Shown: positions 14,543 to 61,790, counted from the stretch's first letter. The stretch is DNA of 64,000 nucleotides from Azolla caroliniana (GCA_043228905.1 JBHGNT010000006.1:1674001-1738000), one strand, 5' to 3'. The notes: generated by a model from the sequence alone, not told the origin. Numbers and translations are program-made.

Positions 14543-16235
14543 TGTTACGGGCATGACCATATAATATCTGTGGTGAGAATGTATCGTAGTATTCTATACA
14601 CGTGGATAAAGTGTGAGGGTTAAACGGGAGTGTAAAGAAGGGGAGGATTACTTTTAATCCTCAGGGTTGAGACAACCCATTAGGCCAAGTGTGAACTTGC
14701 ATGGGGGCCTTGGGTCTCGCTATAAATATGAGGCCTAGCTACCCTCATTTCATCATCTCTTGACTACGTGGAAACTCCATTCTTGTGGTGGGTCAACTCT
14801 TGTAGCGAGCGTGCCAACACCAGGTACGACTCGACGCCACGACGGTGGTATGGGACGCCGATCGAGGCTCGAGTATGTCTCGATCCCTTCGCTCGGATCG
14901 CCACCCGACCACCCCCGATGAGGGTAGCTAGCCCTCATATTTATAGCCAAACCTAAGGCCCTCAAGCAAGTTCACACTTGGCCTAATGGGTTTTCTCAAC
15001 CTTGAGTATTAAAAGCAATCCTCCCCTTCTTTACACTCTCGTTTAACCCTCACACTTTATCCACGTTGTCGCGGTTATTCGCGCGTACATGTCGACTTGG
15101 GCGGGACCACGAGGGTCATGAACTAGGTAGTCGGATGGTGGAGGTCTCGCTCTCAACGAGCCTTGACCCTTTGGTTTTTCGCTCGCGTTAGTTTCCGGTT
15201 GAATTGGTTCGGTCTGGTTCCCAGCCGGATTGGTCCAGATCGGTTTCTGGATGGATCGGCTTGGATCGGTAAGACGATTGACCGTGAACAAGAACTCAAC
15301 TCAAATAGGTGAAAACAAAGAGGATTATACATGAATATATATATGCTACAAATGTTTTACAACGAATCGACTTACAACCCATGAATCTAATGGTTATTAC
15401 AAAACAATCGACTAAATACAACGAGTTAAGAAATGGGAACTGGCGAAGGCGAGTCAAGTGGGTGGTCAAGACCGCAATGTCCACTGTTGGTCATGCCCTG
15501 AAGATTGTGGAGTGTTCCCATGTCACACCATCCTCCCTTCTCGAACTGGCCGCCACACGAAACACTCTCCATCGAGGAGAGGAAGCCAAACCACCAAGTG
15601 CTGCCACCGGAATACCGAAGCGTCGTCGTTGTAGAAACCCCAAACCAAAGCCAAACTCTCACACGAAGAAAACCGAAACCCTAAATCTCCCACGAACTCT
15701 CACAAGATGAAGAACCAAAATGGAACACTAAACCTCCACTCAAGAAGAAGGAACCAAAACCCACAAGAAGAAGAAGACCTAAAATGAAACCCTAAAACGA
15801 AATAGGGTGAAGATGACCAAAGTAGAAACCCTAAGGGAAATAAGAAGAAGAGAAAACTCTCATACCCTAGATCTAAGTGGTATACCCTCCTAACTCAAAA
15901 TGGGCAACCCCTTTACAAGAGACCCCTCCCTTGTTTTATAGTCCAAGGAGGGAAGGACGTTACAATGTGGGACATATATTCCTCTTTTTCAAAGGAGATA
16001 GCTTGCCATGATTTTTGTAGGGGCACGTTAAACATCCTCATGTTCACACTCATTCCTCGATAACTCCCTTTTATTTTATACACATTTTCGAATGTACATG
16101 TGCACACGGTGCAGATTGCCAACTTTGCCCGTTCCATCCAGTTTTCTCACCATAGCTGGAAATCTTCACGACAACGTGTATAGAATACTACGGTACATTC
16201 TCACCACAATATATTATATGGTCATGCCCGTAACA
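14543..16235. mobile_element. Foldback element made of two inverted 5' ends of the chromovirus LTR family
   Basis: Arms 14543-14748 and 14918-15066 plus 16178-16235 are reverse complements and match the LTRs at 40761 and 60369. Termini TGTTAC...GTAACA; 5-bp TSD CCAAG/CGAAG. Confidence 0.85.
15067..16173 (-). mobile_element. Solo LTR of the ACGT-targeting family
   Basis: TGTCG...CGACA termini, TSD ACGT/ACGT. The empty site is visible in the opposite foldback arm (TATACACGTGGATA). Shares sequence blocks with the LTR at 49191. Confidence 0.9.
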
Positions 16236-17897
16236 CGAAGCATTCCATAGAAACTTAGCATTCAATGTCAACCTACAAATGAACGATTAATATCCTACCT
16301 TCATGTTGACATCCTTCAATTGCTCCCAATTTGTTCACATCTTTACTACGGGAAGGGTTCATTTCATATAGATTAGCCTTTTGATCGCAAGGTTGCCGAA
16401 TGTTACTTTTTTCCTTTTGTCATGTAATGCATTGGACAATGTGCAAGTTTTTTGTTGCATTGTGCAAGTATAAAGGTTTGTGGTCCAAGTCTAGTGACAA
16501 TGGGCCAATTATGGATGAGACACCATGGATAAGTCACATTCTTCCACCACTACATAGTCAACTACACTTCCTCCTCCAGAGGTTGGGATTTGTCGTCGGA
16601 AAACCATGGTACCATTGAGTATCTTCAAGTTTGTGCAATTATGCTTGAGCGCAAGAAGCCTACCATGATTTGACATTATACAATTTTTTGAGTGATGTAC
16701 ATTGTCATCAATGTTTACATCTTGATAAGTTCTAACTCTAGCACTAAAATCTCCCACAAACTACCACTTTTCCAACCTTGTCATATGTAAAAATGTTAAC
16801 ACACACACCAAACAAAGGATCATCACAATCTAGCTCATATAAACGATAGTACTTGGATGCTTTATGAGGAATCTAACAACATGCCAAATCAAGTTGATCT
16901 TTACGAGTGTTACTTCCATACACATATATCTTTTGTGTTCATCACACTTAACATACTCTTATGTAGTTTTCCAAACCCTCAAGATAAACACACACAAATC
17001 TTGCTCGCCCAACATTACTTCTAATATGAGGTCATAACGATTTTATGATATAACCATCAATATTAGCAATACCTTTGGCTTCATGCTCCCAAATTTTAGC
17101 CAGAAACATAATATCTTTATCATAAGCGATATGACTTAATCTCAACCCCTTATTACGTGGATATCCTCGACATTTCCAAGACATGATTTTCAAACTTGAG
17201 GTAGTCCCATAGGTCATCGCTTGCTATGGATTTTGAGTTCCTTTTCGGAATGCACTGTCTTTAGCCTTTGTACTCCTTTGGGTTGGATCTTCAGCTTCAA
17301 AGAATGTCGTATCTTTTAGGTAAACACTCCTACGATCTAAAACGATAACACATTTCCTATCATGTAAGAGTCTCCAAACAAAGGCTTTGGTACGATTCTC
17401 TCTATTTCTGATGTCTTTCGACCATATACCATAACATCACTCAAAGCAAAGGGAGAGACAAGAGAGAGAGAGAGAAGATATATATATATATATATTAACG
17501 TCTTCTAAGGCCAAATTTGGCCCATCAAGATCAGAACAGGGCACACATGAATATACTCCGAGTCAAGGAGACTAGCAATCGGGCGGAGGGCCAAGAGTAT
17601 CTTTTAGCTGGGGCCGCTACGATCGAAAGACATGGTGTAGGAATGCCAACGGCGGATAATTTGTATGTATATGTCTTTGTTAAATATGCATGTATGTTTC
17701 ATTGTATATAATGCATATATGTGTGTGCGCATTATTCCTCTTCATTTTTGGTTCATGTTCTCCCCCCCTCCCCTGTTTCTCACTCTTCTCCCCTGTTTCT
17801 CTTCCCCTTTCTTTATTGAGGTATACTGACAAACCCTTCTTTTCTCTCTGTCTCTCTATCTGTGTTCCACTCCTCTTTCTCTCCCTGCATCATAGCT

Positions 17898-21359: not shown

Positions 21360-22296
21360 TTTTTTTTCCAAAAAAAACTCCTTCCATTGGTTATAAAATT
21401 TTATAGATGAGAGTGTTATATACAAATCCTTGTAGGATGTGATAGTTTTATCTTATGTGGATGGTCGCTGACTCAAGAAAGGGAGAGGACGACTACTGTT
21501 GGATGAAGGCTAGTTGTTGTCTTTCAACTCCATCGGATTCGCTTGTGAGGCCATCGTATTGGCTCTTTAGAGTGGCTACAACTTCACTCCATATCTATGC
21601 ATTAACATTACTGGGTGTACAATTTGGTTGGAGAAGACCCGTCTACACAATTGTTTCCATACAATCAAAAGTATTATTGGGTTGACTAATTCCAACACAA
21701 CTTGAGATTTGGCATTAATAGGAGTTGAGTGGATATTGTCGATGGTGGAAAAAAAAACCTCATGTGTTTTTATCACCAAAGTCATCCCCTCCTCTTGACA
21801 TTCATACTTGTCAACTGGGGCATGCCATGATAACTAACATACATTTCCTCACTTGATTGTGCCATGCACCTGGCATAATTGCAATAGGTGGCCAACCCCC
21901 CGCCATATTCAATGGGTCTCTGGGCAATCCCATAGAGCGTGTCAGATTGATTCTATAGCATTTGGGCATGCTACACAATTAGGAGAGCTAAAGGTTCCCA
22001 TGCTGTTATGCTATAACCGGTAGTGATTTATGCATTAATAGCCATTAGAAGGTGGTAATTCGCCTAGCGTGTTGTTGTTTCTAGATTTTTTGCCAGAACA
22101 TAGTGATAATTGTATGAGTAACATGATATGTGTGCCATCCTTTATAGCAGCCGGCTCTCGGTCGGTTTTTGAGCGGCTAAAATGTGGTGACCCAATCTAG
22201 TCGTGAATTGGAAGGAAGGGATGGCTTGACCCACATAAGGATTGCGCCATGTCAATCGCAAAGGGTCCCAACTGACATTACATAGCTATGTGTTTT
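21360..22296 (-). mobile_element. 5'-truncated L1-type LINE 3' fragment
   Basis: IVWKQLCRRVF C-terminal motif; colinear with the LINE at 35782-39000. Confidence 0.8.
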
Positions 22297-23559
22297 CTCC
22301 ATAACTTACTAGCACCAATGTGGAACTTAGATTTTAGATAGGTAGATCATTTTGGTAGAAATTGACTAGTACCAAGAAAAATTAGAGATAAAAAAGATGG
22401 ATACAATGTATGTCCATTATACATAACTTTCACATATTTGGGAAAGATTCACACATACTTAATACATTGCCTTATTTGGCAGAGTTCCGCAAAGTTGATC
22501 AAATTGTCATTATGAATTATATTTAAAGACAGTTTCTTCCTAGTGACTTGTGATTGATGATGTAGAGAGGGTGCATTGCTATCCATCCATTAAAACATTA
22601 AAAATGACAAAATTGTACTATGATCCAAAGCAACAACACCCGTGCCCCCCCAAAAAAAGCACAACAAGGGTTAGCCTTGTCATCTCTATTCTTTTCGTTG
22701 TTTGCACGACCTTGTAATAATGCCTCTACTATAATAAGTGGCAATGCATTGTAAAATTTCGGAACAACTTTCAAATGACTTTGCCTTTCAAATTTAGTGT
22801 CAACAAATATGGACCAAATTTGATTTTTTTAAATGTTATTCTACCCGTTGCCTTAATGATTCATTAGGTAACAGTAAGTTCACCAATTTTTTCAATGTTA
22901 TTATCTAATAAAAACTCTAGACAATTTATATGCAAATAGATCATGGTTGGTCCAAAATATCTAGACAAGGTATGTCAGGGTATTATTTCAGCCTTACGAC
23001 TCTTTAGTTTTCATAAATGAAAACTAAGGCATTGTTGAGAAATGTGAAAAGTAATTATATATAGCCACCAATTGACAACACATTATTTTTACGAGAACTG
23101 AAATTGCATTTACATAGCAAACTAGCTAATGATAAATTGTTTTAGTTCTTCCTTATTATGGATATGAACAAATTTGCTTTTTAGAGGAATAAATCTACTT
23201 TATTTAAAGGTACACAAGTTGGCATGTAAAGCTACTTTTTTCTGTGTGCTAGTCCAACAAATTCTCCCATGGATGATGATGCTTGTTGATATGTCAATAC
23301 GCTTTGATCTCTTGCTTTTGGTAATTGGGAACCCATTAGTAGGATTATGTTTTCAATAATTTTAATGGTGAAGCATTAAAATGTGTTCCTTTAGTACTAA
23401 ATTGATCAAATGTTGGAAGTTAGTTCCACAAAACCTTTGAGAAATGGTAGAGGAACAAATGTTGATAGCTCCATGATATTCAAGAATCTCTATTGGAGCT
23501 CTCATTTTGATAAACCTCTAGCTCTCATTTTGATAAACGAAGTGTTAATTTCATTTGTT

Positions 23560-28199: not shown

Positions 28200-29731
28200 G
28201 TGATCGTCGAAGAGTTGCGAGATCTAGCTCGAATAGCTCTCCCGCTGACAGCGATGAACTGTGTGGTGTATGTGAGGGCCATGGTTTCAGTGCTGTGCCT
28301 GGGGCGCCTGGGAAGCCTGGAACTGGCGGGCGGTGCTCTGTCGGTCGGCTTCACGAACATCACCGGCTACTCGGTCCTCTTCGGGCTAGCTTCGGGGATG
28401 GATCCGGTGTGCAGCCAGGCCTTCGGCTCCAAGAACTGGAGCCTCATCAGCCTGTCATTGCAGAGGACCATCCTCATGCTCCTCTCAACATGCATCCCCA
28501 TAAGCATCATGTGGCTAAACCTGCACAGAATCATGCTGGCATTGGGCCAGAACCCTAACATCACCAGAGTGGCCAGCATCTACTGCATCTACTCGCTCCC
28601 GGACCTCCTGGCCAATAGCCTGTTGCAACCCCTGAGGGTGTTCCTGAGGTCCCAGGGCAATACCGCGCCAATGATGTGGTGCTCGATCCTCGCGGTCACC
28701 CTCCACGTGCCGCTCACCATCCTACTGGTTTTCGTGTTGAAGCTCGGCGTGCCCGGCGTGGCCATCGCGGCGGTTTGGACCAACTTCCACATGGTCATCT
28801 TCCTGGTTCTCTACATGTGGGTCTCGGGTGCTTGCAGCCAGACATGGGGGGGTTGGAGCATTGCTTGCTTCCATGGCTGGTGGCCTTTGCTTAGCCTGGC
28901 TTTGCCTAGCTGCTTTGCAATTTGCTTGGAATGGTGGTGGTATGAAGTGCTTACCATATTGGCTGGCTACTTGCCCAACCCACAAGACAGCATTGCCTCC
29001 ACCTCCATCTTGATCCAGACCACCTCCTTTATGTACACCTTCCCGCTCGCGTTGAGCTCCTCGGTCTCGGTCCGCGTGGGCAACGAGCTGGGCGCCGGCC
29101 GCCCGGCCCGAGCCCGGGTTGCCGCATGGGTGGCCCTCGCGTGCGCGGCCGCCATCGGCGTCACCAACCTCGCGTGGACGACACTATTCCGGCACACGTG
29201 GGGCCGCGTGTTCACGCGCGATGGCCGAGTCCTCATGCTCACCGCCTCCGTCATGCCCATCGTCGGCTTGTGCGAGCTCGGGAACTGCCCCCAGACCACG
29301 GGCTGCGGGGTCCTGCGTGGCAGCGCCAGGCCGGCCATCGGCGCGCGCATCAACTTGGGCTCCTTCTACTTCGTGGGGACGCCTGTCGCGGTAGGCCTGG
29401 CGTTCTGGTACAAGGCCGGTTTCGTGGGGCTCTGGTTCGGGCTGCTCGCAGCCCAGGCAGCCTGTGCGTTCTCCGTGCTTCTCGTGGTGTCCAGGACCGA
29501 CTGGGCACACGAGGCTGCCAAGGCAAAGCAGCTTGCATGCGGCATTGGAGATGGAGATGGAGATGGAGATAGAGATACCCAACGTGAAGTAGAGCTGATC
29601 ATAGCTAGTACTGTACAAGAAGCACCCAGGGGGGATGGCAATACGGCTAATAATAGCGGTACTAGATCTGGTGCCGGTGCTCCCGCTAATAGTAGTGTTG
29701 GCAGGGGGAAGGGTAGAGGTACATATAGCAT

Positions 29732-29766
<35 letters not shown>

Positions 29767-29828
29767 AAGGTGGTGATGATGAGGAGTACTTGCCTTTCCT
29801 ACATCATCATCATGATGACCATGAATGA
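28200..29828 (+). CDS. DTX54: MATE efflux transporter DTX54/BIGE1-like, exon 2 (587 aa in total)
   Basis: [45 protein letters not shown]...[43 protein letters not shown]; resembles Arabidopsis DTX54 from recall. Low-complexity GD/S/H tail. Confidence 0.93.
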
Positions 29829-45074: not shown

Positions 45075-45125
<51 letters not shown>

Positions 45126-45777
45126 GAGAGGAGAGGAGATTTGCAGATACGCAGAAGGGAGAAGGAAAGAGAAAGAAACGGAACACTTAATTACAGTAAC
45201 CGTCGATTACAATATCAAGAGATTACAAACTCTGACGATTACAACCAGCAAGGCGGCGATGGACCCGACACGGGGATCCTACTCACGCACACAGACAGAA
45301 CACACTGGACCCCCCCCCCAAAAAAAAGCGTAGAAGGGAGAGCCTCTACTGGCAGCGCACGGGCTACCCACGAAGCAGAGGCGTCGAACTCCCAGCACCC
45401 ACAGAGAATGACGATCGGAGGAGGAGAGAGAGCTCGGCACTCGGTCCTGCAGCACTTCGTCCTCCCTAACGCGCGATGCCCTTTCTTCCTTCTCTCCCTC
45501 CTTAAATAGTTCGCAAAAAGGGGGGGGTGCCCCTTTCTCCCTAGTCAAAACCGCTTTATTCCCTGTCCCTTTCGACAGAGATACGCACAAAACCCCTAAT
45601 AAATGTGTACTACCTAGTATTTACATCAGCCGACCTAATTACGAATTATGTACAAAATATCATTTCTCGCGTCCACTCGTGTAAGAGCCGGTTCATGCGC
45701 CTTTTTCTCTGATTCCGCCCATGGCCGGTTTTCTTCACGACAACGTGTAAGTGGTTGTGGCCGGCCGATTCCTAACA
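44526..45777 (+). mobile_element. Ty1/Copia solo LTR related to the LTRs at 53412 and 58215
   Basis: TG...CA termini, TSD CTTCA (44521-44525, 45778-45782), shared blocks GTCCCTCCGGATGGG, CTCAAGGTTGTTGCC and CCCGTGGTTTTT. Confidence 0.88.
45013..45742 (-). mobile_element. Solo LTR of the ACGT-targeting family inside the Copia solo LTR
   Basis: TGTTGCGTTGTTACGCGCG...CACGACA; TSD ACGT (45009-45012, 45743-45746). Confidence 0.9.
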
Positions 45778-48410
45778 CTTCAGGTCTATACACATCATTT
45801 ACGTAATGTCAATGTTCTTTCCCTCACTATGTGTTGGGACCCAATGATTTACTACGTGCAAATGGGTATATCAATGGATTTCCAATACAATTTTCATTTA
45901 ATTCAGGAAGCTCACACAACTTTGTGAATGATCGTTTGGTTCAGATATGGGGAATCCAACCCACCATAAGTGATCACACATATAAGGTGCGCTTGGTTGA
46001 TGAAAGAGTACAATGAGGTGATTCATTCATTAGGAATTTCTATTGATACTTATATAGAGGAAGTAGACTTCCATGTAATAAATCTTTGTACCACTGATGT
46101 AATATTGGGTTATCTCTGGTTTTTTAATAAAAACTTTTCTTTATCTATTGATTGGGTTCTTCATTCCATTACTTTTGTACTAAACGATTCTACTCATTTT
46201 ATTCAATGTGTTAAAAAACAATCTCCTTCGATTGTTTCCTCTCCATCAATATGCGAGTTGTCTTATTCTACTTTATTTTATTGTGTACTTGATCCACACA
46301 TTCACGTTACAATATTGATAATGTTTTGGTTCAATTATCATATTTTGAACAACAACTCGATGAAATCTTAAATGATTTTCGTGATGTTTTTTCGAGTGAA
46401 CTACCACATGGGTTACCTCCTAAATGTAATATAGACCATCGTATCGATATTCTACCTGGTGTTGCACCAATAAGTATACCTCCTTATCACTTATATCAAT
46501 CCGAAGAGGATGAGGTATCTAAGCAACTCAAGGACTATTTATGAATGGGTTATATACGTTATAGTAAATCTCCATGGGGTGCACCTGTTCTCTTGGTAAA
46601 AAAGAAAGAGGGCACATGACGTATGTGTATTAATTACCAACGCCTGAATAAAGTGACGATCAAGAATTCATATCCATTGCCTCGCGCTGGCGATCTAATT
46701 AGCCGTCTCTAGGGAGCTTGGTATTTTACAAAACTTGATCTCCGTGCAGGCTACCATCAAATTCGTATAAGTGAGGACAATGTTCCTAAAAGGACATTTC
46801 GTGCATGTTATGGCCATTATGAGTTTTTGGTTATGTCTTTTGGTTTGACCAATGCTTCGGCCACATTTCAACAAGAAATGAATGACATTTCCGAGAACAA
46901 CTTGGAAAATTTGTCGTTATTTTCTTGGATGATATTCTAGTTTATAGTCGTACATTAGAAGAACATGCTAAACATGTCCCCTTTGTTTTACAAACATTGC
47001 GCGACAAACAATTCTACGCGAAGATCTCAAAATGTGAGTTCTTCAAGAAATCAATTTCTTATCTTGGACATCTCATAACCGAACGAGGAGTTGAAATTGA
47101 TCCTTCTCGCATCGAGAGATTCAAACTTTGGCCCACTCTTGGGAATATTCGAGAAGTTCAATCATTCATTGGTTTTGTCGGGTTTTTGCGAAAATCCCTT
47201 CCTAATTACTCCCAATTGACAACACGGTTTACTGATCTTCTAAAAGGTCAAACACGTAAGTCTACAAAACCTATTGTGTGGAATCCTAAACTAGACCTCA
47301 CCTCTAAGGAACTCAAGGACTTGGTATGCAAGGCTCCTTCACTTCTTTTACCCGATCCTTCAAAACCTTTTGAGGTTGAAACCGATGCAAGCGATTATGC
47401 TATAGGTGTTGTCTTATATCAAGATGGTAAACCAATAGCATTCAAGAGTAAGAAACTTGATTCTTCTCAATGTCGGTATGCTGTTCAAGAAAATGAATTA
47501 ATTGCAGTTATACATGCGCTCAAAACATGGCATGATTATCGTTATGGATATCGTTTTGTGGTAACTACGGACCACGAGTCCTTGAAATATTTCTATGACC
47601 AACAAGACCTGAAAGGTCGTAAGGCACAATGGGCTCATCTCATTCAGGACTTTGATTTTTCCATATGATATCGTAAAGGTTCCATGAACACTGTCCTTGA
47701 TACACTAAGTCGCATCCGTGAAGTTAACATGCTTAGCTTCACTGAAATAACATCATATCTTTATGATCACCTTCGAGGAAAGTATCTTGATGACAATTAT
47801 TTTGCGAAATATTGGGCAAGAGTTGAGTCTGGAACAGACACCACTACATCCTCGAAGGAATCCTTTCACATTGCTAATGGTCTGCTCTATCGTAATGGGA
47901 AGGTTTGTGTTCCACATTTGCTTGAGGTCAAAAAGAGAATTATTTTTGAATGCCATGATGCACCCTCAACAGGGCACCCTGGAATACATCGTACACTCGT
48001 TCTCAACTCGACTCAATTCTATTGGCCTAAGATGCGTCCTAACATACATAGCTATGTGACTAAATGTCACCAATGTCAGGTTAACAAAGCCAAGTGACTT
48101 AAAGCCACAAGACTTTTACATCCCTTGGACATTCCCAATAATAAGTGGGAAAGTATATCCATGGATTTTATTGTTAGCCTTCCTCGCACCCAAAAAGGCC
48201 ATGATGCCATCTAGGTTGTGGTTGATAGACTAACTAAAATAACCAGATTTATTGCTACTAAAACCACGATAACAGCTCCTGAATTGGCTTACCAATTCGT
48301 TGACAAGTTATTTCGTTTTTATCGATTACTGATGGATATCGTGAGTGATCGAGATCCAAACTTTACTAGTGACTTATGGATGCAAGTCTTTAAGAAGTTA
48401 GAAACTACGT

Positions 48411-49070
48411 TGTCGTGGAGAAAACCGCCCCCTAGGAGGAATCGGTGGATAGTGTGCGTGAACCGGCCCTTACACATGGGCACATGTTTTGATGTATTGT
48501 ACATAGTTAGGTACAGGTCGGCGATGTGAATATCCTAGGTAGCGCGTATGCATTAGGTAGAGAATCGAGGGGTATCTCTATCAAAAGGGACATGGAATAA
48601 AAGTGATGGAACAGACTCTAACGTCTCTCTCCTTGGGCTATAAAAGGAGAGGAGAGGGGATCACGTTTTAGGCAAGGACGAGGTGTTGTCGGAATGGGAA
48701 CCGAGCTCTCTCCTCCTTTTTCGTTGCTCTTTGCAAGATTCTGGGTGGGTTGCCTCTACTTCGAGGAAAGCCGTGTGCATTCGGGCAAGGCTCTAATGTG
48801 TGTGCGTATGGGTGTGTGATTGTTTGGGTTGGGTATGATGTCGGCTAGGCGGTTGTAATCTTGCTAACACTGTAATCGTTACTGTTGTTGTAATTGAATC
48901 TCCTGTTTTTCGTCTACATGTGTTTCTCCGGCAAACGTTGTTGGTTGTAGACAAGTCTACCCCAGCCCTACGCGCACACGCTTCTCCCTTCCTCTTCTTT
49001 CGCTATCTCCTCGGTTCAGGGCCCTCGTGGTCCCGCCTTATTTCCCACGCGAAAGCAAAATAACTTGACA
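48411..49070 (+). mobile_element. Solo LTR of the ACGT-targeting family inside the chromovirus integrase
   Basis: TGTCGTG...TGACA; TSD ACGT (48407-48410, 49071-49074). The host integrase reads ETTL(T)MSS once the insert is removed. Confidence 0.9.
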
Positions 49071-52000
49071 ACGTTGACCATGAGCTCCACGGATCATCCT
49101 CAATCCGATGGACAGACAGAACAAGTAAATCAAATTATTGAGGACATGCTTCGAGCATACGTTGGTGCAAAACCAACAAAATGGGAACGTTGTCGTGAAG
49201 AATTTCGGCCATAGGCGAAAACCGGGAAACATTGTCTACATCGGCGGGGTGCAGCGTGTGTACGCACCCATGTACATTTGGTGTGAATATTGAGGGCACC
49301 TTTATGGCGCCGAAGAGTAGTCAAGTCGGGACAGACGATCCCATGAAAGTCGGGATTTGTCCCACATTGTAACGCGTCCCTCTCCTTGTTCTATAAAAGG
49401 GAGGGAACGCCCTTTGTAAAAGGGGTTGCCCATTTTGGATTAGAGGGTATACCGGTAGGTTTAGGGTTAGGGTTCTTCTGCTTCTTCTTCTTCCCCTTCG
49501 TGTTCGTTTAGGGTTGGCTGCAGCTTGTCTCCTGTGCAAGACGCCGCTCGGCGTGACGAGCCCGAGAGCTCCCCGACGGCGGCTTGACAGCAGACGACTG
49601 TTGTAAACTATCTTGGTCCGGCTCGAAGCCGGGAGTGTATTCTCTCTATATATATATACATATACGTTTGCGTCTGTCTGTGTATATTGGCGTCTTGTTG
49701 GTGTCGAGTGCTCCACTCCTTCCCTGCGTTTCCTGTACATAAGGGCGTGAGTCGGGTCGGGCTGTGTGTGCGTGTGTGTGCGTGAGTCGGTGTTAAGCAC
49801 GCTCTCTCTCTCTCGCTCTCTCCCCCCCTTCGGTTGCTTCCGGTGTGTTTCTGAGATGCCCCAGAAGCCGTGAAGCACGACTTCCTACGCTCCGTCGCTC
49901 CCTAGTCCAAGATCCCCGTGGTCCTGCCTTTCTCCACGCACGCGCGTAACAACGCGACATCTTTGGTGAACCCGACGTGAAAGGCGGCAAGGGAGGATGG
50001 AGTCGGAAGACGACGACCTTGTGGAGATGGTGGCCGAAGTGGTGTTGGAGTCGGCACGAGTGGTGATGAGGCGAGAAGCAACACAACAAGCGGTTGGTCG
50101 AAAGAGTCGGCCGTTTCAACGGGGACAAAGTCCCATCTTACTTGGAAGCCTACAACACGGAAATGGGAGAGCGTGGCGTAGACGAGGCGTTGAGGCTGGA
50201 GTTCTTCTGTCGGGTCGTAGCTGTCCGGATGCATGCGGAAGTAATGGAGCTCCGTGACGCTCGTGGTTCATGGGAGGCCTTCGAAGAGGCGCTCCTGAAG
50301 GCATACGGAGGACGGTGGAAGAGCCAGGGATGGCACCACTTCGACCAGTGGGTAGCATCGACAAAGACCCACCGGGGTGCGACGAAGGCGTTCCGGGAGT
50401 TCGAGCGACGACTTGCTCGGCTCCCAGAGCGGGAACAAGGTTTGGTGGGGGCGGACAAAGTCCTTTTGTTCGTCAGGTCAATCGACCGAGCGGAACGGGA
50501 AGCCATCGGGATTGAGCTCGAAGACGATGATGGAGCGAATGGGCTTGCGGAGGACTGGTCGAGGGTCGGAAGGGTGTGCCAAAGGCTAGGCAATGAGTGA
50601 GCCGAGAAGGCTAAGAGGAAGGTACGCGACGGCGTGCCATCACAGCGGGAAGAGGCCGAACGGCAAAGAGAGTCGGCAAGGGTCGGCGTAGGGGCCAGGA
50701 TTGCGGAGGCGTATGCAGCTCTCAAAGCGAAGCTCGAGGAAGAGGGGAAAATCGAAGCCGAAGAAGGGCTTATTATGGAGTCGGGCCGGAGGCGATCAGA
50801 GGATGAGGGGGCCGAAAGAGAAGATCGGTACCACGGTACCACGGGAGAGGGTGCGGAACGAAATGGCCTCTCGACTTGCGGAGAGAGAACGGCCAAGGAG
50901 AAGGCCGAGATACGGATCGCGGAACCGGAATGTTGGGACCAGCGGTTTCGGGCGTGTCAGCCCGAGATCCCGGTCATTGAAGAAGCAAGCCCAGATGGGG
51001 CTTGCGCGATCGGTAAGAAGTCGACCACCGACCACGGAGAGCCGGTGGCTACGGACAAGGGCGTAAAACGGACGGGTGATTCTGTGTCTTCCCACACTTG
51101 CTCCCAAGATGATGGCAGTCGGGCCCGAGTACCCACGTGAGTCCCAAGCGGAGGAAGGCGGCGGCGGAGGGCCAAGAATCACCGGCGAGACGATACGGGG
51201 AAGGAGCAGACGAAAGCCCACAGACCCGATTCCGGAGAACTCGGCACTCGGGCCCGTATGCCCATGTAAGACCGAGGAGATGGATGGCGGTACCGAGGAG
51301 TCCTGGCACGATGCCAGCAAAGACGGATGGGAAACGGCCTGCGAGGAGGCCGAGGACGGACACGGCACGAGGGGATCAGCATTCTGATGCGGGTGGAGCG
51401 TGATCCGGTCATGGATCGTTTGTTCGGGTCCGGTTTCGGCATGGAAGAGCCGATACAGAAGGCGGTGCGGGACGAACCGCCCTCTTTTACATGGGGAGAA
51501 AGACCGACCGGACAAAGGTCGAGATTAGGAAAGAGAATGAAATCCGGTCCTATGGGATTCCTTACACTGGTCAGGCTGCAGGCCCGAGTGCCGGCGCAAG
51601 TCCTGTATGAGAGACGGTGGCGACAGGAGAACGGGACTCACCAATCCGGAGAAAGACGAACGGACCCGGACGAGAACCGGGCGGAGCGGACTCCCGGATG
51701 ACCATTCCGGGAGGGAGGAAGAGAGCAGGTCTACGAAGAGGCCGAGGACACGGTACGTCGGTACCACGGGAGAGGGTGCGGAGTAGACCGCCCTCTCGGC
51801 ATGAGGAAAAGGACGACCCGAGATAGGGTCGGGAAGACAAATCGGGGAGGCCTACGGAGGATCCTTCACACCGGTTCTAGAGACTTCGGCAGTCGGCAAC
51901 GCGGTCGACGTAAGACCAAGATACTGACGGTGGCGGCGAGGTGACGAAGGCAAGGGCTACGGAAGGGCGGTCTACGGAGGATCCTTCACACCGGTTCTAG

Positions 52001-53411
52001 AGACTTCGGCAATCGGCAACGTGGTCGACGTAAGAATAACATACTGACGGTGGCGGCGAGGTGACAAAGACAATGGGCATAAGGAAGTCCGGTCCTACGG
52101 GATCCCCACACTTAATCGGAGACTCCGACAGTTCGGCCAACGTGGCAACATGAGACTGAGAGAGAAGGTTGGTGGCGGCGGGAAACGGGACCCGCCTACG
52201 CGGAAGGCACGAGGAGAGTCCGGGAGGGACTCGAACAAAAGGCACCCGACTTTCGGCAAGCATAGAAACGGAGTCCGGTCCTATGGGACCCTCACACCGA
52301 TCCGGAGGCTCCGGCAGTTCGGCCAACGTAGCAACGTAAGACCGAGGGAGAAGGACGGTGGCGGCAGGGAACGGGACCCGACGACACGAAGTTCGGAAGA
52401 AGCCGGTAAAGGGCAAACACGGGGAGGTGTGTCAGGCCGGAAAGGCACACCTAGAACAGAACAAGAGTCTCACAAATGGCCATCGCGGGCCGGATCAAAG
52501 CGTGACTACGGGACGGTGCTCGGCGTGGGCGAGGCCGAACGAAGGAAGCGGAAGACGGCACAAGGGAGGTGCCGAGAACAAAGGGACAAGTGCCTAGTGA
52601 ACTGCACAGGGTCGGAGTCAGGATGGCAAGAGAGGCCGGAGGAGGATCCTCCACACTCGCTTCGTAGATCTCGGTAGCTCCGTCGAAGTAACAAAGACCG
52701 ACACGGCAAGCCGGGGTGACAAGCTGGTGGGGGCGAGGGGACGACGGCAAGCGGAAGATTCAGGACTTATCGTAGCAACACGACGACGGGAAGGGCCAAG
52801 CGGGCTACTGCGGGGTGTTCCTCGGATGCAAAGGTCACCGGTATGCGGGAGAACAGCGATGCATGATCAGGCCGGAAAGGGGCCGACAAGGAGTGCAACA
52901 CGGGCAGTACCAAACGACAGACGAGGGTAGTGGCACATGGAGGTGCCAGAGCGGAAAGGCGAGCGCGGAGAAGGCCGGAAAGGGATCTTCCACACCGTTC
53001 CGGAGACCATGGCGGTTCGAGCCGACGCGGCGATGTAAGACCATGGAGAAGGAAGGCGGCGGCGTAAGGACGAAGGCCACGCGAAACACCATCGGGACAT
53101 CACGATTCGACAACGGAGGCCAAGCGGGTTGCCACAGGCATTCCTCTAGCGGAGGAGATCGGGCATACAGCGGGAAGCGGGGCGTTCATACGGCCGAACA
53201 AGGGCCAACGGAAGAACGCGTGCTACGGAGATCGCAGCAGAGGACCCATCGACGGGTCGAACAAGCCTACGGGGAGGTGAGCGCGAAGGAAGACTCGAAG
53301 CCGCCAGATCAAACCGGCAGCGAGCCGAGATGCGGATCACGGGAGACCGGTTTCTCGCCGACCGAAATCTCTCACCCTTCAGCCAGATTTGGCACGTACC
53401 GGTGGACGTGT

Positions 53412-56400
53412 TGTTGGGATTTCGGTCCCTCCGGATGGGATGTCCGGAGATGAATGACGGCAAGCCCGGTTACGGTTACGGAACCGGACGAAGATACAGG
53501 CCCGGTGAAAGTACTCACCGGGTGTGAAGAGTACCCGGTATGAAGCCGGATGATGAAGACCCCGGCTACGGAGCCGAATGATGAAGACCCCGGCTACGGA
53601 GCTGGATGACGAATGTACCCGGAGAGAGATCCGGATGCGGGGACATATTTGTGAATATGTTTGCCAAGGCCCCTTGAGGCTATATTTGTAAATAGCCCGA
53701 AAGTCATATGTGTATAAATATGACTTAGGGCAAACTGTTTATTGTTGCTGTAAGTTGTTACTCATTTTTCTGTTTTTCCACTTAGAGGGAGCTAAGTGAG
53801 CAGCCGAGAAAGAGAGAGAGAGAGAGAGACGAAGAGGTCGTTGCCTCTGTGTATTACCGCCGCCTGTGGCGAAGACAGTGAGCTCAAGGTTGTTGCCTTG
53901 TAGCTTCACCATTGTACATCTCTGTGTATAGTGATAGTTGGAGTTTGAGGACTCCCGTGGTTTTTCCCCCTTAGGGTTTTCCACGTAAAATATCCTGTGT
54001 ACTCTTCTCTCTATTGTCTTCGTGCATTTTTTTTGTATTTCCTATTTTCTGTGAGTTGATCCTATTCCTCGGTTGTGGCCGAGCACTGTGCTTTACAAAC
54101 TGGTATCAGAGCAACGTTTACACAGAAAATGGAAGGCGGCGGTAGTGGGCCTCCGGGCATGATGGTGTTGAACTCACAGAACTACGCCGACTGGAAGATA
54201 AAGATGGAAGACCTTCTCATCGTCCGAGACCTGTACGAACCGATCGACAATGCCGAGATACCCAAGGGGGTAATAGAGTCGGAGTGGAAGCTCCTGAACC
54301 GGAAAGCCGTAGCGACGATCCGGCAATATGTCGATGTAAGTGTTCTGCAACATGTGGTGAACGATACGAACGCCTATGAGATGTGGCAGAAGCTGTCCGA
54401 ACTGTATGAGAGGAAGAATGCTCTGACCCGGACCTCCCTGATGAGGAAGATAGTGAATCTTAAGTACCGGGACGGCGAGAGCATGGTCGAACACGTCAGC
54501 ACGTTCATGGGATTCGTGAACCAGCTTGCGGCGATCAAATTCCCGTTGGATGACGCAATGCAAGCCATCATGCTGATGTGTACCCTTCCGGAGAGCTGGG
54601 AGAACTTGGTAGTTACTCTCAGCACCTCCTGTAAGGAAGAGAACTTGTCGTTACTAACGGTAAAGACAAGTATTCTAAATGAAGAAGCGCGTCGGAGAGA
54701 TAAAGAACCGGCCTCCGACTCGAAGGCGCTGCTTACCGAATCGGAACGGGGAAGACAACGGAACCGGAGTCCGCAAAGACGGGAGAAGTCGGGGACACGG
54801 TCGCAGTCGAGGGGAAGACCTACATGCTTCTACTGTGGGAAGCCGGGACACTTCCAGAAGAACTGTCGGCATTTCCGGAAAGACAACGGAACCGACGGTA
54901 CCGATTCGAAGAAGTCACCGGAGCGAAACGGTGCATACCGGGGAGCCACGGACCGGAACGGTTCGGATCAGTGAGGGCAGGACCGGAAAGGAACAACGGC
55001 ACTCGCGGCAAGTGAAGAGGAGATCATGCTCATCACCGAAGAAGGTGAACTAAACATTGCCGGCGATGAGACTACCTGGGTGGTCGATTCCGGAGCGTCG
55101 TTCCACCTGACCCCGGAAAGAAGATACTTCTCATCCTACACAGCCGGTGAGCATGGCTGTGTTCGGATGGGAAATGAAGGTACGTGCCGGATTGCCGGCA
55201 TAGGAGACGTGTGGTTGACAACCTCGACCGGATGCAAAATGTTGCTGAAGGATGTCCGACACGTTCCGGAGGTTTGATTGAACCTGATTTCGGCCGGGAG
55301 GCTAGACGATGAAGGCTACACAGGTAGCATCCGGAACGGCGTAATAAAGTTAAGCAAGGGGAGCCTGATAGTGGCTCGGGCCTGGAAAGTCAACACACTG
55401 TACCTTATGAATGCCTGGTTGTGTCCGGAGGAGCTGAACGTGGCAGCTGACACTGCCGGTGAGCTGTGGCACAAGAGACTGTGCCACATGAGTGAGAAGG
55501 GGATGAAGAGGCTTGCAGAAGACAACCTTATTCCAGTGAAGCATGTGCACCTGGAGAAGTGCACCGATTGCCTGGCTGGTAAGCAGAACCGAACCTCCTT
55601 CCACTCAAGGCCACCGATGAGACGTAGTGTACCATTGGAGTTGGTACACACTGATGTGTGTCAGGTAGAAACGAAGTCACATGGCGGAGCCCAGTACTTC
55701 GTAACATTCATAGATGACCATAGCCGGAAGCTGTGGACGGCACCGTTGAAGACAAAGGACCAAGTATTGTCCGTCTTCAAAGAACTCCACGCGAGAGTGG
55801 AAAGAGAATCCGGCAAGAAGCTGAAAGCACTACGAGCGGATAACGGAGGAGAATACCGAGGGCAATTTGAGGAGTATTGCCGTTCGATGGGAATCCGGCT
55901 CGAGTTTACTGTGCCGAAGACGCCGGAACTGAACGGGCTGGCCGAGAGGATGAACCGGACCATAATGGAGAGGGTTCGGAGTATGCTAGCACATGCGAAA
56001 TTACCCAAGGGATTTTGGGCTGAGGCAATGTCGACGGCGACATATGTGATAAATAGATCACCCTCAGTACCCCTGGATGGAGACACGCCACAGAGAGTGT
56101 GGACCGGTAAGGAAGTGTCCTACCGGCATCTGAAGGTGTTCGGGTGTCTCGCATACGTGCATGTGGCAAAGGACCGGAGAGGAAAGTTGGATCCAAAGAC
56201 CCGGCCATGCATATTCCTCGGTTACGGCGACGACGAGTTCGGCTACCGAGTATGGGACCCGGTCGACAAGAAAACATTCAGGAGTCGAGATATCATCTTC
56301 ATGGAGGACAAGACACTCGCCGACTGGGAGTCGGAGAAGAAGATGAAGAGCTCCAAGTCGACCGGTGAGGATCAACTCTACGAGGAGCAGTCCCGACCGG

Positions 56401-58872
56401 CAAGGGACCGGTTAGCACTCGAGGATCCGGCCGAAGACGGTGAAGAAACAGAACCGGCCGAGGAAGATGAAACTGATACCGGAACCGGCCCCGATCCCGG
56501 AATGGATTCGGATGAAGAGGAAACGGAGGAGCCGGTTACCGAAGCTCCGGAACGGAGATATCCTCTAAGAGAGAGAAGGGCCCCCCGGAGATTTCCGGAA
56601 CCAGAGCACGTGCTGCTAACCGACGAGGGGGAGCCGGAGAGTTTTGAATAGAAGCAAAGCTTGACACCCATAGCCGCAGGTGGTTAAGTGCCATGCAGGA
56701 GGAGATGGATTCCCTGCATGAGAACCACACATATGAACTTGTGGAGTTGCCGAAAGGAAAGCGAGCACTTCAAAACAAGTGGGTGTTCAAGCTGAAACCG
56801 GGAGATGCCGGAAACCCCCCGAGATACAAAGTCAGGATCGTGGTGAAGGGGTTCCAGCAGAAGAAGGGCGTCGACTTCGACGAGATATTTGCCCCGGTAG
56901 TGAAGATGACCTCCATCCGGACGGTGCTGAGCATAGCGGCAAGCATGGACCTCGAGGTAGAACAGATGGACGTGAAGACGGCATTCCTTCACGGTGACCT
57001 CGAAGAAGAGATCTACATGCAACAACCGGAAGGATTCGAGAGGAAAGGGAAGGAGCACCTGGTATGCCGGTTGAAGAAGAGCCTTTACGGACTGAAGCAG
57101 GCTCCCCGGCAGTGGTACCGGAAGTTCGACTCCTTCATGACCGACGAAGGGTACCACAAAACGCAGTCCGATCACTGCGTGTTTGTGAAGAAGTTCGAAG
57201 GAGGAGACTTTCTAATACTCCTCCTGTACGTGGACGACATGTTGATCGTCGGACGGGACCAGGTCAAGATACGGATGCTGAAGAAGGCGCTTCACCGAAC
57301 CTTCTCAATGAAGGACCTGGGTCCGGCGAGGCAAATACTAGGGATGCACATCATCCGGGACCGGAAGAAGAAGCAGTTGTGGCTGTCACAGGAGAAGTAC
57401 GTGACAAAGGTGCTTCACCGGTTCAACATGTCGGAAGCAAGACCGGTCGGGTCAACCCTCCCGGCAAACTGCAAGTTGTCCAGCAAGCAAAGCCCCAAGA
57501 CAAAGGCTGAGAAGGAGGACATGATGAAAGTACCATATGCCTTTGCCGTCGGAAGCTTGATGTACGCAATGGTGTGTACAAGACCGGACATAGGATATGC
57601 AGTCGGAGTGGTGAGCCGGTACATGAGCAATCCCGGCAAAGAACACTGGAACGCGGTCAAGTGGATACTCCGATACCTGAAGGGCACGGCAAACGTGTGC
57701 CTCCGATTCGGCTCCGGTAAGCCCGAACTCGATGGATTTACCGATTCAGACATGTCGGCTGATGCAGATACCAGCCGGTCCACATCAGGGTATGTGATGA
57801 CGTATGCAGGGGGGGCTGTTTCGTGGCAGTCGAGGTTGCAGAAGACGGTTGCGTTGTCAACCACGGAGGCGGAGTATATGGCGGCTGTTGAAGCCGGCAA
57901 GGAAATAATATGGATGAAGGACTTCATTAGAGAACTCGGTATCCGACAGGAGGAGTACCGACTCTACTGCGACAGTCAGAGTGCAATTCACCTTGCGAAG
58001 AACGCGGCCTACCATTCCCGGACGAAACACATCCAGCGTAGATACCACTGGATCCGGGAAAGGATAGAAGACAAGGAGTTCGTGCTGACGAAGATCCACA
58101 CGGACGAGAACGGGTCGGATATGCTGACCAAGGCGCTCACACCCGACAAGCTGGAAGCATGCCGGAAGAGGATCGGATTGGAGAGACATCCCATGCCGAA
58201 GTGAAGGGGGAGTTTGTTGGGATTTCGGTCCCTCCGGATGGGATGTCCGGAGATGAATGACGGCAAGCCCGGTTACGGTTACGGAACCGGACGAAGATAC
58301 AGGCCCGGTGAAAGTACTCACCGGGTGTGAAGAGTACCCCGTATGAAGCCGGATGATGAAGACCCCGGCTACGGAGCCGGATGACGAATGTACCCGGAGA
58401 GAGATCCGGATGCGGGGACATATTTGTGAATATGTTTGCCAAGGCCCCTTGAGGCTATATTTGTAAATAGCCCGAAAGTCATATGTGTATAAATATGACT
58501 TAGGGCAAACTGTTTATTGTTGCTGTAAGTTGTTACTCATTTTTCTGTTTTTCCACTTAGAGGGAGCTAAGTGAGCAGCCGAGAAAGAGAGAGAGAGAGA
58601 GAGACGAAGAGGTCGTTGCCTCTGTGTATTACCGCCGCCTGTGGCGAAGACAGTGAGCTCAAGGTTGTTGCCTTGTAGCTTCACCATTGTACATCTCTGT
58701 GTATAGTGATAGTTGGAGTTTGAGGACTCCCGTGGTTTTTCCCCCTTAGGGTTTTCCACGTAAAATATCCTGTGTACTCTTCTCTCTATTGTCTTCGTGC
58801 ATTTTTTTTGTATTTCCTGTTTTCTGTGAGTTGATCCTATTCCTCGGTTGTGGCCGAGCACTGTGCTTTACA
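53412..58872 (+). mobile_element. Full-length young Ty1/Copia retrotransposon
   Basis: LTRs 53412-54097 and 58215-58872 are nearly identical. TSD CGTGT, PBS TGGTATCAGAGC (tRNA-iMet, 54101-54112), PPT GAAGGGGGAG. Confidence 0.97.
54129..58204 (+). pseudogene. Copia gag-pol with two in-frame TGA stops (54972, 55275) and a +2 frameshift (~56649)
   Basis: CFYCGKPGHFQKNC; WVVDSGASFH; LWHKRLCH; FIDD..DNGGEY..NGLAERMN; LYVDDML; RNase H GFTDSD..STTEAEY. Confidence 0.95.
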
Positions 58873-61790
58873 CGTGTAGTTAGGTGGGGGCGGATGTCGT
58901 GAAGAATTTCGGCCATAGGCGAAAACCGGGAAACATTGTCTACATCGGCGGGGTGCAGCGTGTGTACGCACCCATGTACATTTGGTGTGAATATCGAGGG
59001 CACCTTTATGGCGCCAAAGAGTAGTCAAGTCGGGACAGACGATCCCATGAAAGTTGGGATTTGTCCCACATTGTAACGCGTCCCTCTCCTTGTTCTATAA
59101 AAGGGAGGGAACGCCCTTTGTAAAAGGGGTTGCCCATTTTGGATTAGAGGGTATACCGGTAGGTTTAGGGTTAGGGTTCTTCTGCTTCTTCTTCTTCCCC
59201 TTCGTGTTCGTTTAGGGTTGGCTGCAGCTTGTCTCCTGTGCAAGACCCCGCTCGGCGCGACGAGCCCGAGAGCTCCCCGACGGCGGCTTGACAGCAGACG
59301 ACTGTTGTAAACTATCTTGGTCCGGCTCAAAGCCGGGAGTGTATTCTCTCTATATATATATACATATACGTTTGCGTCTGTCTGTGTATATTGGCGTCTT
59401 GTTGGTGTCGGGTGCTCCACTCCTTCCTTGCGTTTCCTGTACATAAGGGCGTGAGTCGGGTCGGGCTGTGTGTGCGTGTGTGTGCGTGAGTCGGTGTTAA
59501 GCACGCTCTCTCTCTCTCTCGCTCTCTCCCCCCCTTCGGTTGCTTCCAGTGTGTTTCTGAGATGCCCCAGAAGCCGTGAAGCATGACTTCCTACGCTCCG
59601 TCGCTCCCTAGTCCAAGACCCCCGTGGTCCCGCCTTTCTCCACGCACGCGCGTAACAACGCGACAACATTATCTCCCAATTTTGGAGTTTGCTTATAACA
59701 ACTCCAAGCATACGTTTATGGGATATAGTCCTTTTATGTTGATGTATGATTTTCAGCCACGAGCCCCGATTGATGTTAATATACATCATGATGAGTTGCG
59801 AAGTACGCAAAACTTTCTTCGGGATATGCAAGATATGTTGCATATTGCACGAGATAATATAAAAATAGTTCAAGATAGAGCACGTTTTTACACCGATCAT
59901 AATAGGCAACCTCGTGTATACAACCCTGGTCAAAAGGTATTTTTACGTGTACCTCACAATTCTAAGACATTGTCTACGGGTAAGTGCGCTAAGTTAGCCC
60001 CACAGTTTTGTGGACCTTATCAAGTCAAACACATTGGTTCATCAACTTATCGTCTCACTCTTCCCGATGGCAAATTCATCCAATTTTTCATGTAAGTCGT
60101 CTAAAAGAACTTTTAGGTTATTGCGACAATACAGTTACAACTGAAACTCTGGTTACTTTTGAAGAATTATCTTTTAAACCACATGTACCAAAAATAATTC
60201 TGGATGTTAAAACAAAAAATATGTGTACTAAAACAATCCGAGAATTTAAAATTAAATGGATGGATAAATCTATCAAAGATGCCACATGGGAACGCGAAAA
60301 TACTCTTAGAACTAACTTCCCTAACTTTCTATTGCAAGAGTGCAATGTTTTAAAGAGGGGGAGGAGTATGTTACATGCACGACCATATAATATCCCGTGG
60401 TGAGAATTTACCGTAGTATTTTATACACGTGAATAAGTGTGAGGATTACTTTTAATCCTCGGGATTGAGACAACCCATTAGGCCAAGTGTGAACTTGCTT
60501 GGGGGCCTTGGGTCTCACTATAAATATGAGGCCTAGCTACCCTCATTTCATCATCTCTTGACTATGTCAGGACTCTGTTTCGTGGTGGGTCAACTCTTGT
60601 AGCGAGATCGCCAACACCATGTATGACTCGACGCCACGATGGTGGTATGGGACGCCGATCAAGGCTCGAGTCTGTCTCGATACCTTCGCTCGGGGGTGGT
60701 CAGGTGGATCAACAACCTTCTTTCTCTCTCTACTTTCTTATTTCATATATATTATATCCTTATCATACGCTTACATTAGATCATCACTATAACATCTAAA
60801 AGCAATGTTTTCATGATTGTGTGCCCTTTTAATTAAATTAAAGAATAACACTAATGGAGAGAATATGTTATAAGCTAAATAGCCTAAAGCATTGATATCA
60901 ATTGAAAGGCTCCTACATGGAGTGGATTAGGGCTTTGACTTGCTCGCATTTGATATATTAATGATGAAGTAGGCTCTTTAAGGTAGTTCCACATAAGGGC
61001 ACATGCAAGGAATAGCCCAACATTTGGTTCAAGAAGAACCAAGGTAAATTATCTAATTCTTTAGGGACCAAATTAAAATCATGTGACACAACTAAATCCA
61101 ACTTGCAATCGACATAAGATATATGAATAGATTAGTGTCTAGGAGTAAATCCTCTTCTATGGTGCTCAAAAGTGAGTGAGACTCGACGAGTACCACCACC
61201 AACACCTATATAATCGATCTTGGCACGACAAGGCAATGTTGATGTTGGGTTTGAGAAAACAACATTGGCCTTGTTTCTTAAAACACCCGTGGGAACTTCC
61301 AACTTACATTTATAATTTGACAGAAATAACTGAAGAAATCTACCAAATTCCTCACGATCAGCTTTGATACCATGGCCGGTCACTAAAGAAAAATTTCCCC
61401 GAACACAAGACCATGGTTTTGAGTTGTGTTACATGGACTTCTTTTTTTGGTAGACCAGACCATCCATAAACACATCACTAGAGAAGAGTCAGTAAACTTT
61501 CCGCTCCCTCAGTGGATTTTTTTTCCTTGGTTTCAAGTCTGAATCTTAGCGGTATTTTGCCCAAATCCTTCAAGCCCCACATCGATTTTCATCGGGCACA
61601 TCGAGAAATCAAGGTCTCAGACTTACATTTTACCCCAGATGTTCAAATGAGGGGAGGATCTAGGGTTTCAGACATACATTTTGAGCTCACAGTTCAATGA
61701 TTAGATTGAAGATCTCTCTGTAGGGGAGATGACCCTCGGCTTATTTTTACCGATAATGTGAAGATTCGTCATTGTCATCTTCTAGGTGAC

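Follow-up and report, generated by a model that had tools for sequence, protein, structure and literature searches.

What decides where a retrotransposon lands? The question is raised by a 64,000-nucleotide stretch of Azolla caroliniana DNA (GCA_043228905.1 JBHGNT010000006.1:1674001-1738000), here called the window, in which diverged but related long terminal repeats (LTRs) of one retrotransposon family have inserted six times. A preliminary description of this DNA held that the family selects the palindrome ACGT, duplicates it as a 4-bp target-site duplication (TSD), always settles inside other transposons, and follows a target rule with no prior description. In the account that follows, we conclude that the target is built around a central CG and is wider than ACGT, and that the six insertions probably belong, five as solo LTRs and one as a gag-only copy, to a Phygy-type Ty3/gypsy family, which uses a tRNA-Trp primer and a 4-bp stagger centred on NCGN.

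Six insertions and their flanks

The insertions are lettered A to F in the order of their positions in the window, and each is flanked by a 4-bp repeat:

A, 15067-16173, minus strand: solo LTR of 1107 bp; TSD ACGT at 15063-15066 and 16174-16177; inside an inverted pair of chromovirus LTRs
B, 41242-42793, minus strand: solo LTR of 707 bp without its guest; TSD ACGT at 41238-41241 and 42794-42797
C, 41718-42562, minus strand: solo LTR of 845 bp nested in B; TSD at 41714-41717 and 42563-42566
D, 45013-45742, minus strand: solo LTR of 730 bp; TSD ACGT at 45009-45012 and 45743-45746
E, 48411-49070, plus strand: solo LTR of 660 bp; TSD ACGT at 48407-48410 and 49071-49074; in the integrase core of the host chromovirus
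F, 49191-59665, plus strand: full element; TSD ACGT at 49187-49190 and ACAT at 59666-59669
Primer-binding site (PBS) of F, 49964-49980, plus strand: TGGTGAACCCGACGTGA, after a 4-nt spacer downstream of the 5' LTR; complementary to the 3' end of plant tRNA-Trp
Polypurine tract (PPT) of F, 58882-58894, plus strand: AGGTGGGGGCGGA, abutting the 3' LTR
Host chromovirus (Ty3/gypsy), 40761-60794, plus strand: 3' LTR at 60369-60794; 5-bp TSD TCTAA

Boundaries and flanks agree with those first proposed, with TG...CA ends and 4-bp duplications at all six insertions. Read in the orientation of the element, the flanking tetramers are ACGT/ACGT at four of them, ACGT/ACAT at F, where ACAT is a decayed ACGT, and ACGG/ACGG at C (CCGT on the plus strand). 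The LTRs start with TGTCGTG(A/G)AGA in every copy but C (TGTTGTG) and end with (A/C)CGCGACA in most, with CGCAACA in D and CTTGACA in E. Searches with blastn and nhmmer found the seven LTR copies to be mutually homologous, several pairs at full length by nhmmer (C matches the LTRs of F from end to end), with common blocks in the first ~35-40 bp, at ~165-350, and in the last ~60 bp; the same searches found no further copy of the family in the window. Measured against window tetramer frequencies outside family DNA (ACGT 0.16%, NCGN 2.0%), five or more ACGT among six sites would be expected by chance with a probability of ~7e-14, and six NCGN among six with a probability of ~7e-11.

All six copies lie within transposon DNA, in the hosts assigned to them earlier. 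The chromovirus at 40761-60794, which encodes reverse transcriptase (RT)-RNaseH, Integrase_H2C2, rve, SH3, and Chromo (E 2.9e-5) domains, carries B (with C inside it), a Copia solo LTR (with D inside it), E, and F as guests, and the inverted LTR pair around A belongs to the same chromovirus family. B sits at the 3' end of the host's 5' LTR or in its leader, and F lies between the integrase core and the SH3 domain. The Copia solo LTR that received D spans about 44540-45777, and the left flank of D matches Copia LTR positions 14-614. The elements offered for comparison do have 5-bp duplications, TCTAA for the chromovirus and CGTGT for a Copia element nested in F.

Some local features accompany these copies. 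The host of A, at 14543-16237, consists of two inverted host-chromovirus LTRs that are 93% complementary over 149 nt, the right arm being split by A. Solo LTR B contains a plant telomere-type repeat at 41472-41510 (AAACCCT-like; 2.7 copies of a 15-bp unit), and solo LTR D contains a (GA)n microsatellite at 45074-45139.

Duplicated target or terminal repeat

ACGT is palindromic and continues the inverted TGTCG/CGACA termini. One filled site thus fails to discriminate between a duplicated target and a longer terminal inverted repeat of the element itself (ACGTTGTCG...CGACAACGT), whereas empty sites tell the two apart. When the flanks of A were abutted and aligned to paralogous copies, three host chromovirus LTRs read ...TTATCCACGTGTATAG..., with a single ACGT. 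For E and F, the three pieces of the interrupted host integrase were searched separately against solved structures and aligned collinearly to Ty3 Gag-Pol (7q5b_A): 48218-48409 to residues 1194-1256, 49071-49190 to residues 1256-1295, and 59667-60092 to residues 1295-1428. Exactly one codon is repeated at the E and F junctions, as a 4-bp TSD predicts, and the host reading frame is unbroken if each TSD is counted once; the flanks of B and D are non-coding or degenerate in this check. The three empty sites of the preliminary description are thus independently verified, by paralogous LTRs for A and by the Ty3-aligned integrase for E and F.

With exactly one ACGT in the empty sites, the idea that the tetramer belongs to the element is already refuted, and two further observations speak against it. 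The tetramer varies from site to site (ACGG in the window; ACGC, ACGA, CCGG, and ACGG in the Riccia sorocarpa elements described below), and the internal ends of the LTRs are followed by TCTT/TATT and the PBS, or preceded by the PPT, with no ACGT. We give a terminal-repeat origin of ACGT practically no chance.

Target sites across the family

Is ACGT the rule outside the window? The family was sampled with a pattern placed on a conserved box near the 3' end of the LTR, which returned 112 matches in 110 contigs, all from ENA assemblies ERZ1034375-ERZ1034427; a viral contig collection held no match to the LTR box or to the LTR end plus PBS. Contig L101 is 91-96% identical to F over 3.9 kb, its interior running uninterrupted through the Copia site, and this identity places the contigs in the same plant or in one very close to it, so that they serve as the genome-wide sample called for in the preliminary description. 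The tRNA-Trp PBS follows 29 of the 112 matches, which are thus internal ends, and 77 matches are unique outer ends.

CG occupies TSD positions 2-3 in 66 of the 77 outer flanks (86%), against a background of 3.2%, the NCGN frequency in the same metagenome flanks (P ~2e-86); in another seven, TG or CA takes its place. Positions 1 and 4 are mirror images, with A48 C16 G10 T3 at position 1 and T37 C20 G17 A3 at position 4. Relative entropy amounts to ~1.7-1.8 bits at each central position and 0.3-0.5 at the outer TSD positions, with almost none beyond. Among the tetramers upstream of LTR starts that lack a PPT, 12 of 14 are NCGN. ACGT is the commonest tetramer (24/77, 31%), followed by ACGC, ACGG, GCGT, CCGT, and CCGG.

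The target is NCGN, roughly VCGB, i.e., (A>C>G)CG(T>C~G), and not ACGT. A site-selective, CpG-centred 4-bp target was therefore rightly proposed, and the target logo suggested as a check does reveal an enrichment of CG at positions 2-3 in the metagenome copies, whereas ACGT as the rule has to be given up, at 31% of the 77 flanks.

Three contigs (L001, L032, and L101) have a tandem-like appearance, reading interior-LTR-PBS-interior or holding two PBS copies. This is what a short-read assembler yields on collapsing two LTRs, and we do not take them as true tandems.

A gag-only copy and its autonomous relatives

F is the only copy in the window with an interior. Its LTRs, at 49191-49959 (769 bp) and 58895-59665 (771 bp), are 98.2% identical, and its own interior comprises 49960-53411 (3.45 kb) and 58873-58894, between which another element has inserted:

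Gag-like open reading frame (ORF), 50094-50600, plus strand: 168 aa; the only recognisable ORF of the F interior
Nested Ty1/copia element, 53412-58872, plus strand: 5.46 kb, not a member of the family; LTRs of about 686 bp, 95.5% identical

F is non-autonomous, with gag only and pol absent. Its primer we take to be tRNA-Trp, as the preliminary description did, from the 3' end of the plant tRNA; TGGTGAACCCGACGTGA stands at 49964, and likewise after the 29 metagenome LTRs counted above. The same primer appears in the Phygy lineage table (PMC6317226). ARAGORN found no tRNA genes in the window or in eight further loci. At the other end of the interior, GGTGGGGGCGGA recurs in the metagenome contigs, ahead of 17 internal LTR starts.

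The gag ORF of F, like the ORFs of L001, matched no Pfam family. With the gag of contig L067 it shares 41% identity over the N-terminal part of the latter (E 2e-34), and it has relatives of up to 76% identity, all from metagenome assemblies and nearly all from ENA; more distant homologues contain DUF4100 and adjoin RT-RNaseH-integrase genes. The nested Copia element, with ORFs for gag (299 aa), integrase (457 aa), and RT (503 aa), lies beside the PPT, with 22 bp between it and the 3' LTR of F. Its 5-bp TSD is CGTGT, and the empty site is present in L101.

The preliminary description had recommended a search for an autonomous partner with the tRNA-Trp PBS, and L067 is one. It has the same LTR end and PBS as the window family, a 725-aa gag with DUF4100, and a complete 1166-aa pol with RT, RNaseH, Integrase_H2C2, and rve domains; the contig is truncated, and we estimate the full size at about 7.3 kb. 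The integrase C-terminus, which had been singled out as a place to look for targeting domains, shows none in L067: no chromodomain was found in the tail at E <= 0.1, nor anything else, and a Pfam search of the pol found no second RNase H of the RNase_H or RVT_3 type. By its domain content, L067 is an autonomous, non-chromovirus relative within Ty3/gypsy. A further autonomous relative, P0115 plus P0377 in GCA_015689235.1, is known from its gene layout.

The best named relatives of the L067 pol are Riccia sorocarpa polyproteins, at 58-65% identity. Five Riccia elements (L113-L117) are intact, with sizes of 8.7-9.9 kb, LTRs that are 95-100% identical, and termini of the form TGTCGTG...(C/T)GACA. 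All five have perfect 4-bp TSDs of the NCGN type (ACGC, ACGA, CCGG, ACGG, and ACGT), and their PBS is of the Trp type in three and Thr-like in two.

The Thr-like primer site, TGGTGCTTCCACTGAGAG, occurs in DUF4100-gag relatives, namely in L002 (1470-1510), L116, and L117 (near 5900 in the latter two), all with the LTR end ...CGACA kept. Since L116 and L117 retain the 4-bp NCGN duplication with this PBS, the target rule is independent of the primer tRNA.

Several side observations concern F itself. Its interior at 49960-53411 is purine-rich on the plus strand (GC content 0.60, GC skew up to +0.24, AT skew up to +0.27), holds many long spurious ORFs on both strands, and includes 120-bp tandem repeats at 51845-52145. 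The PBS at 49964-49980 has an exact complement in abundant small RNAs of plants that go by the annotation miR894 (...TTCACGTCGGGTTCACCA); for Cryptomeria, such RNAs were reported as mapping to gypsy elements (PMC5846777). These RNAs probably derive from the 3' portion of the primer tRNA and could target the lineage that has this PBS.

Lineage and prior description

The guess that the family is Phygy-like proved right by diagnostic features, and every feature listed for Phygy that is testable here was found. Neumann et al. 2019 (Mobile DNA, PMC6317226; REXdb) describe Phygy from 186 elements as having TSDs of "4 bp (100%) (NCGN)", a PBS for tRNA-Trp (81%) or tRNA-Thr (6%), a size of 7656-9968 bp, and no extra domain, and as specific to Physcomitrella patens. 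In our material, the 4-bp TSD is present at 6/6 window insertions (three of them by empty site) and in 5/5 Riccia elements, and the NCGN target at 6/6 window insertions, in 66/77 metagenome flanks, and in 5/5 Riccia elements. The domain order, with neither chromodomain nor extra RNase H, is that of L067, the window copy having no pol. The primers are likewise tRNA-Trp with a minority of tRNA-Thr, and the autonomous copies measure 8.7-9.9 kb in Riccia and an estimated ~7.3 kb for L067, a little below the 7.7-10 kb given for Phygy. A further likeness is that the elements often nest in chromoviruses: Jedlicka et al. 2019 (PMC6911290) found Phygy in Tcn1 chromoviruses to be the commonest recurring nested pair in P. 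patens, listed Phygy among the few lineages dominated by 4-bp TSDs, and characterised 4-bp TSDs as palindrome-like, with a GC-rich centre and AT-rich flanking positions. Later work based on TEsorter reports Phygy in a liverwort (PMC12885004).

There are also differences. The window is not from P. patens: the product of its MATE gene is 60% identical to the P. patens homologue, compared with 73-75% to those of Selaginella, Ginkgo, and liverworts and 76% to that of Diphasiastrum, the best match. The window copy is a gag-only, non-autonomous derivative, and the original Phygy paper (PMC6317226) does not give the refined preference, in which position 1 is A-rich and excludes T, while position 4 is T-rich and excludes A.

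The supposed absence of any prior description of the target rule does not hold, since Neumann et al. 2019 list NCGN for Phygy and the nesting is in Jedlicka et al. 2019; an existing description with this target was the condition that the preliminary description had itself set for refuting novelty. The 4-bp TSD at NCGN, the tRNA-Trp primer, and the chromovirus nesting have been in print since 2019, and as a discovery the present case adds little to them. The published record of the target rule consists of one sentence and one table cell, without a mechanism; a literature search for NCGN together with retrotransposons turned up no further treatment, and the publications on Phygy consulted here leave the mechanism unaddressed. 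What the present analysis contributes can be stated as follows:

(i) The rule extends beyond P. patens to a second non-seed plant and to the liverwort Riccia sorocarpa, which makes it an old, conserved property of the lineage.

(ii) The preference is sharper than previously described, with most of its information in the central CG, an A-rich position 1, and a T-rich position 4.

(iii) Gag-only, non-autonomous derivatives obey the same NCGN rule.

Could the family instead be TatI, the Tat subclade of Selaginella moellendorffii? TatI shares the 4-bp TSD (100%) and the tRNA-Trp PBS (75%; PMC6317226), and the window MATE protein is closest to lycophyte proteins. TatI elements, however, have an additional archaeal-type RNase H in 100% of cases, and there is none in the 1166-aa pol of L067 or among the Pfam domains listed for the Riccia polyproteins; NCGN and the pairing of Trp with Thr primers, both seen here, are noted for Phygy only, with no NCGN preference reported for TatI. 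We consider membership of TatI highly improbable and retain the Phygy assignment.

Two other identities were rejected. The family does not belong to the chromoviruses: the integrase tail of L067 has no chromodomain, whereas the host element has one. Retrozymes have 4-bp TSDs, and together with TRIM-type elements they resemble the gag-only copies in being non-autonomous LTR elements mobilised by Ty3/gypsy partners. The window copies differ from these in having LTRs of 660-1107 bp, a gag ORF, and no hammerhead; an Rfam scan of the window, in which no family reached its gathering score, rules out a retrozyme or Cassandra-type identity.

Nesting in transposons

Why do the copies pile up in other transposons? 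That all six insertions lie in transposon DNA is correct, and the word "always" overstates it, as there are five primary events, four of them in one CG-rich host. Outside family DNA, the window offers 81 ACGT and 994 NCGN sites, and of these, 27 and 204, respectively (33% and 21%), fall in the host chromovirus, whose 6.5 kb make up 13% of the sequence. NCGN density per kb is 31 in the host chromovirus, 69 in family DNA, and 15 in unannotated DNA. The ratio of observed to expected CpG (CpG o/e) differs between regions:

Young family copies and Copia: CpG o/e 0.96-1.12
Host chromovirus: CpG o/e 0.82
Older solo LTRs: CpG o/e 0.58-0.95
AT-rich remainder: CpG o/e 0.42-0.62, with a matching excess of TG+CA

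The accumulation in transposons would then be a by-product of target choice, in that young transposons keep their CpGs and the AT-rich background has lost them, with insertions into genes additionally removed by selection. For an element that requires CG, young transposons and genes offer most of the sites, and hits in genes are unlikely to survive; passive CG availability thus accounts most simply for most of the nesting. In the metagenome, at least 27 of 65 flanks have transposon protein homology (12 Phygy-type, 13 Copia, 1 chromovirus, and 1 LINE), a figure (42%) that comes without a control and from contigs biased towards repeats.

Several results weigh against our overall account. At 12 of 14 metagenome solo-LTR candidates, the TSDs of the two sides differ (2/14 match), a mismatch that we attribute to chimeric short-read assembly across the repeated LTR; the logo was accordingly built from one-sided flanks, and two-sided matching was not taken as evidence. 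ACGT is more frequent in the window than across the family (5/6 against 31%; Fisher P = 0.018), an excess that may come from subfamily differences or from AT-rich target contexts. The Phygy assignment is based on diagnostic features and not on a phylogeny with labelled references, and the mechanism put forward below for the integrase is an inferred one. Clustering in the host chromovirus, finally, is somewhat unlikely by chance even after correction for availability: four or more of the five primary insertions would land in this host with P = 0.045 if ACGT sites are taken as available and 0.007 if NCGN sites are, which is suggestive but weak, the test using five primary events and a region noticed after the fact.

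This residual clustering leaves room for a regional or chromatin preference beyond sequence, whether for nucleosome-occupied transposon DNA or through co-mobilised composites of host plus guest. Phygy-in-Tcn1 pairs do recur at the same position, in several cases in the interval from integrase to chromodomain, and the study that reports them also draws a link, in general terms, to nucleosome occupancy (PMC6911290). The small number of primary events and the after-the-fact choice of region count against such a preference, as do the diverged subfamilies and differing positions of the guests and the lack of a second copy of the composite in the window; we regard it as possible, though unlikely. 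The same excess has been part of a bolder proposal, that the integrase recognises methylated CG and actively steers into silenced transposon territory. The location of all six insertions in transposon DNA and the homology of the metagenome flanks to transposon proteins fit this proposal, and the seven of 77 TSDs with TG or CA in place of CG are compatible with deamination of methylated sites. Methylation cannot, however, be read from sequence, the L067 integrase tail contains no methyl- or chromatin-reader domain, and the targeted transposons are those with the highest CpG o/e (0.8-1.1 versus 0.42-0.62), so that plain CG density already predicts them; the flank figure has the limits given above, and selection against gene hits has filtered the insertions that survive. 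Active steering by methylated CG is, in our judgement, improbable, and passive availability of CG continues to be our preferred explanation.

Proposed mechanism of target choice and its precedents

The 4-bp stagger across which the integrase links the LTR ends to the target has a CG exactly at its centre. We envisage that a two-fold symmetric integrase-DNA complex reads this central CpG step directly at target capture. Base-pair precision and mirrored outer positions would place the specificity in this target-capture complex and not in a tether, which gives regional precision, and a chromatin tether fits poorly with an L067 integrase that has no appended reader domain. F and other gag-only copies presumably depend for pol on autonomous relatives, L067 among them, that would mobilise them in trans, because LTR ends, PBS, and PPT are common to both.

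A 4-bp stagger is also made by prototype foamy virus and murine leukaemia virus. Retroviral integrases, those with this stagger included, have a weak palindromic target consensus (references in PMC2527525), and the rice element Tos17 has the target ANGTT-TSD-AACNT (cited in PMC6911290). Like the present family, these have a preference with two-fold symmetry about the staggered cut, which has been ascribed to a symmetric multimer of integrase, but their preferences are weak, worth fractions of a bit, compared with the ~1.7-1.8 bits per central position found here. A closer parallel in strictness is the integrase of Drosophila ZAM, another LTR retroelement with a strict CG-rich palindromic target, whose purified protein binds CGCGCg directly (Faye et al. 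2008, PMC2527525). ZAM differs in being an insect errantivirus-type Ty3/gypsy element with env, from an unrelated lineage and with a longer target, and direct binding of CG by the plant integrase is putative.

An integrase that sets its cuts on CpG to the base pair is among the most sequence-specific known for plant LTR elements. The strongest form of the idea is that the integrase has read the central CpG base-specifically since before the moss-liverwort split, and that it discriminates or requires cytosine methylation and so homes into silenced DNA. Its sequence-specific part is likely; the combined claim is quite improbable. Methylation-dependent reading, if true, would be the new part; no LTR retroelement is known to home by an epigenetic mark at the cut site. 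The family would be a tractable system for studying how an integrase reads its target and whether cytosine methylation plays any role.

Other features of the window

The MATE gene (DETOXIFICATION 54-like) is an intron-free ORF at 28200-29828 with a GC content of 0.59 amid DNA of 0.33-0.35, and its tail is of low complexity, with GD repeats, a serine run, and a histidine run. Members of a repeat family, about 600-900 bp long and with 74-84% identity, lie at 21375-22297, 35782-36388, and 38677-39002, and these flank the MATE gene on both sides, 14.4 kb apart and in direct orientation. A second inverted repeat, at 13761-14119, has arms of 151 nt (92%). The region at 2800-7400 contains hAT transposase fragments, with the dimerisation domain at 3113-3595, together with LINE fragments that include an RT at 4681-5400 and an endonuclease at 6873-7364, both on the minus strand.

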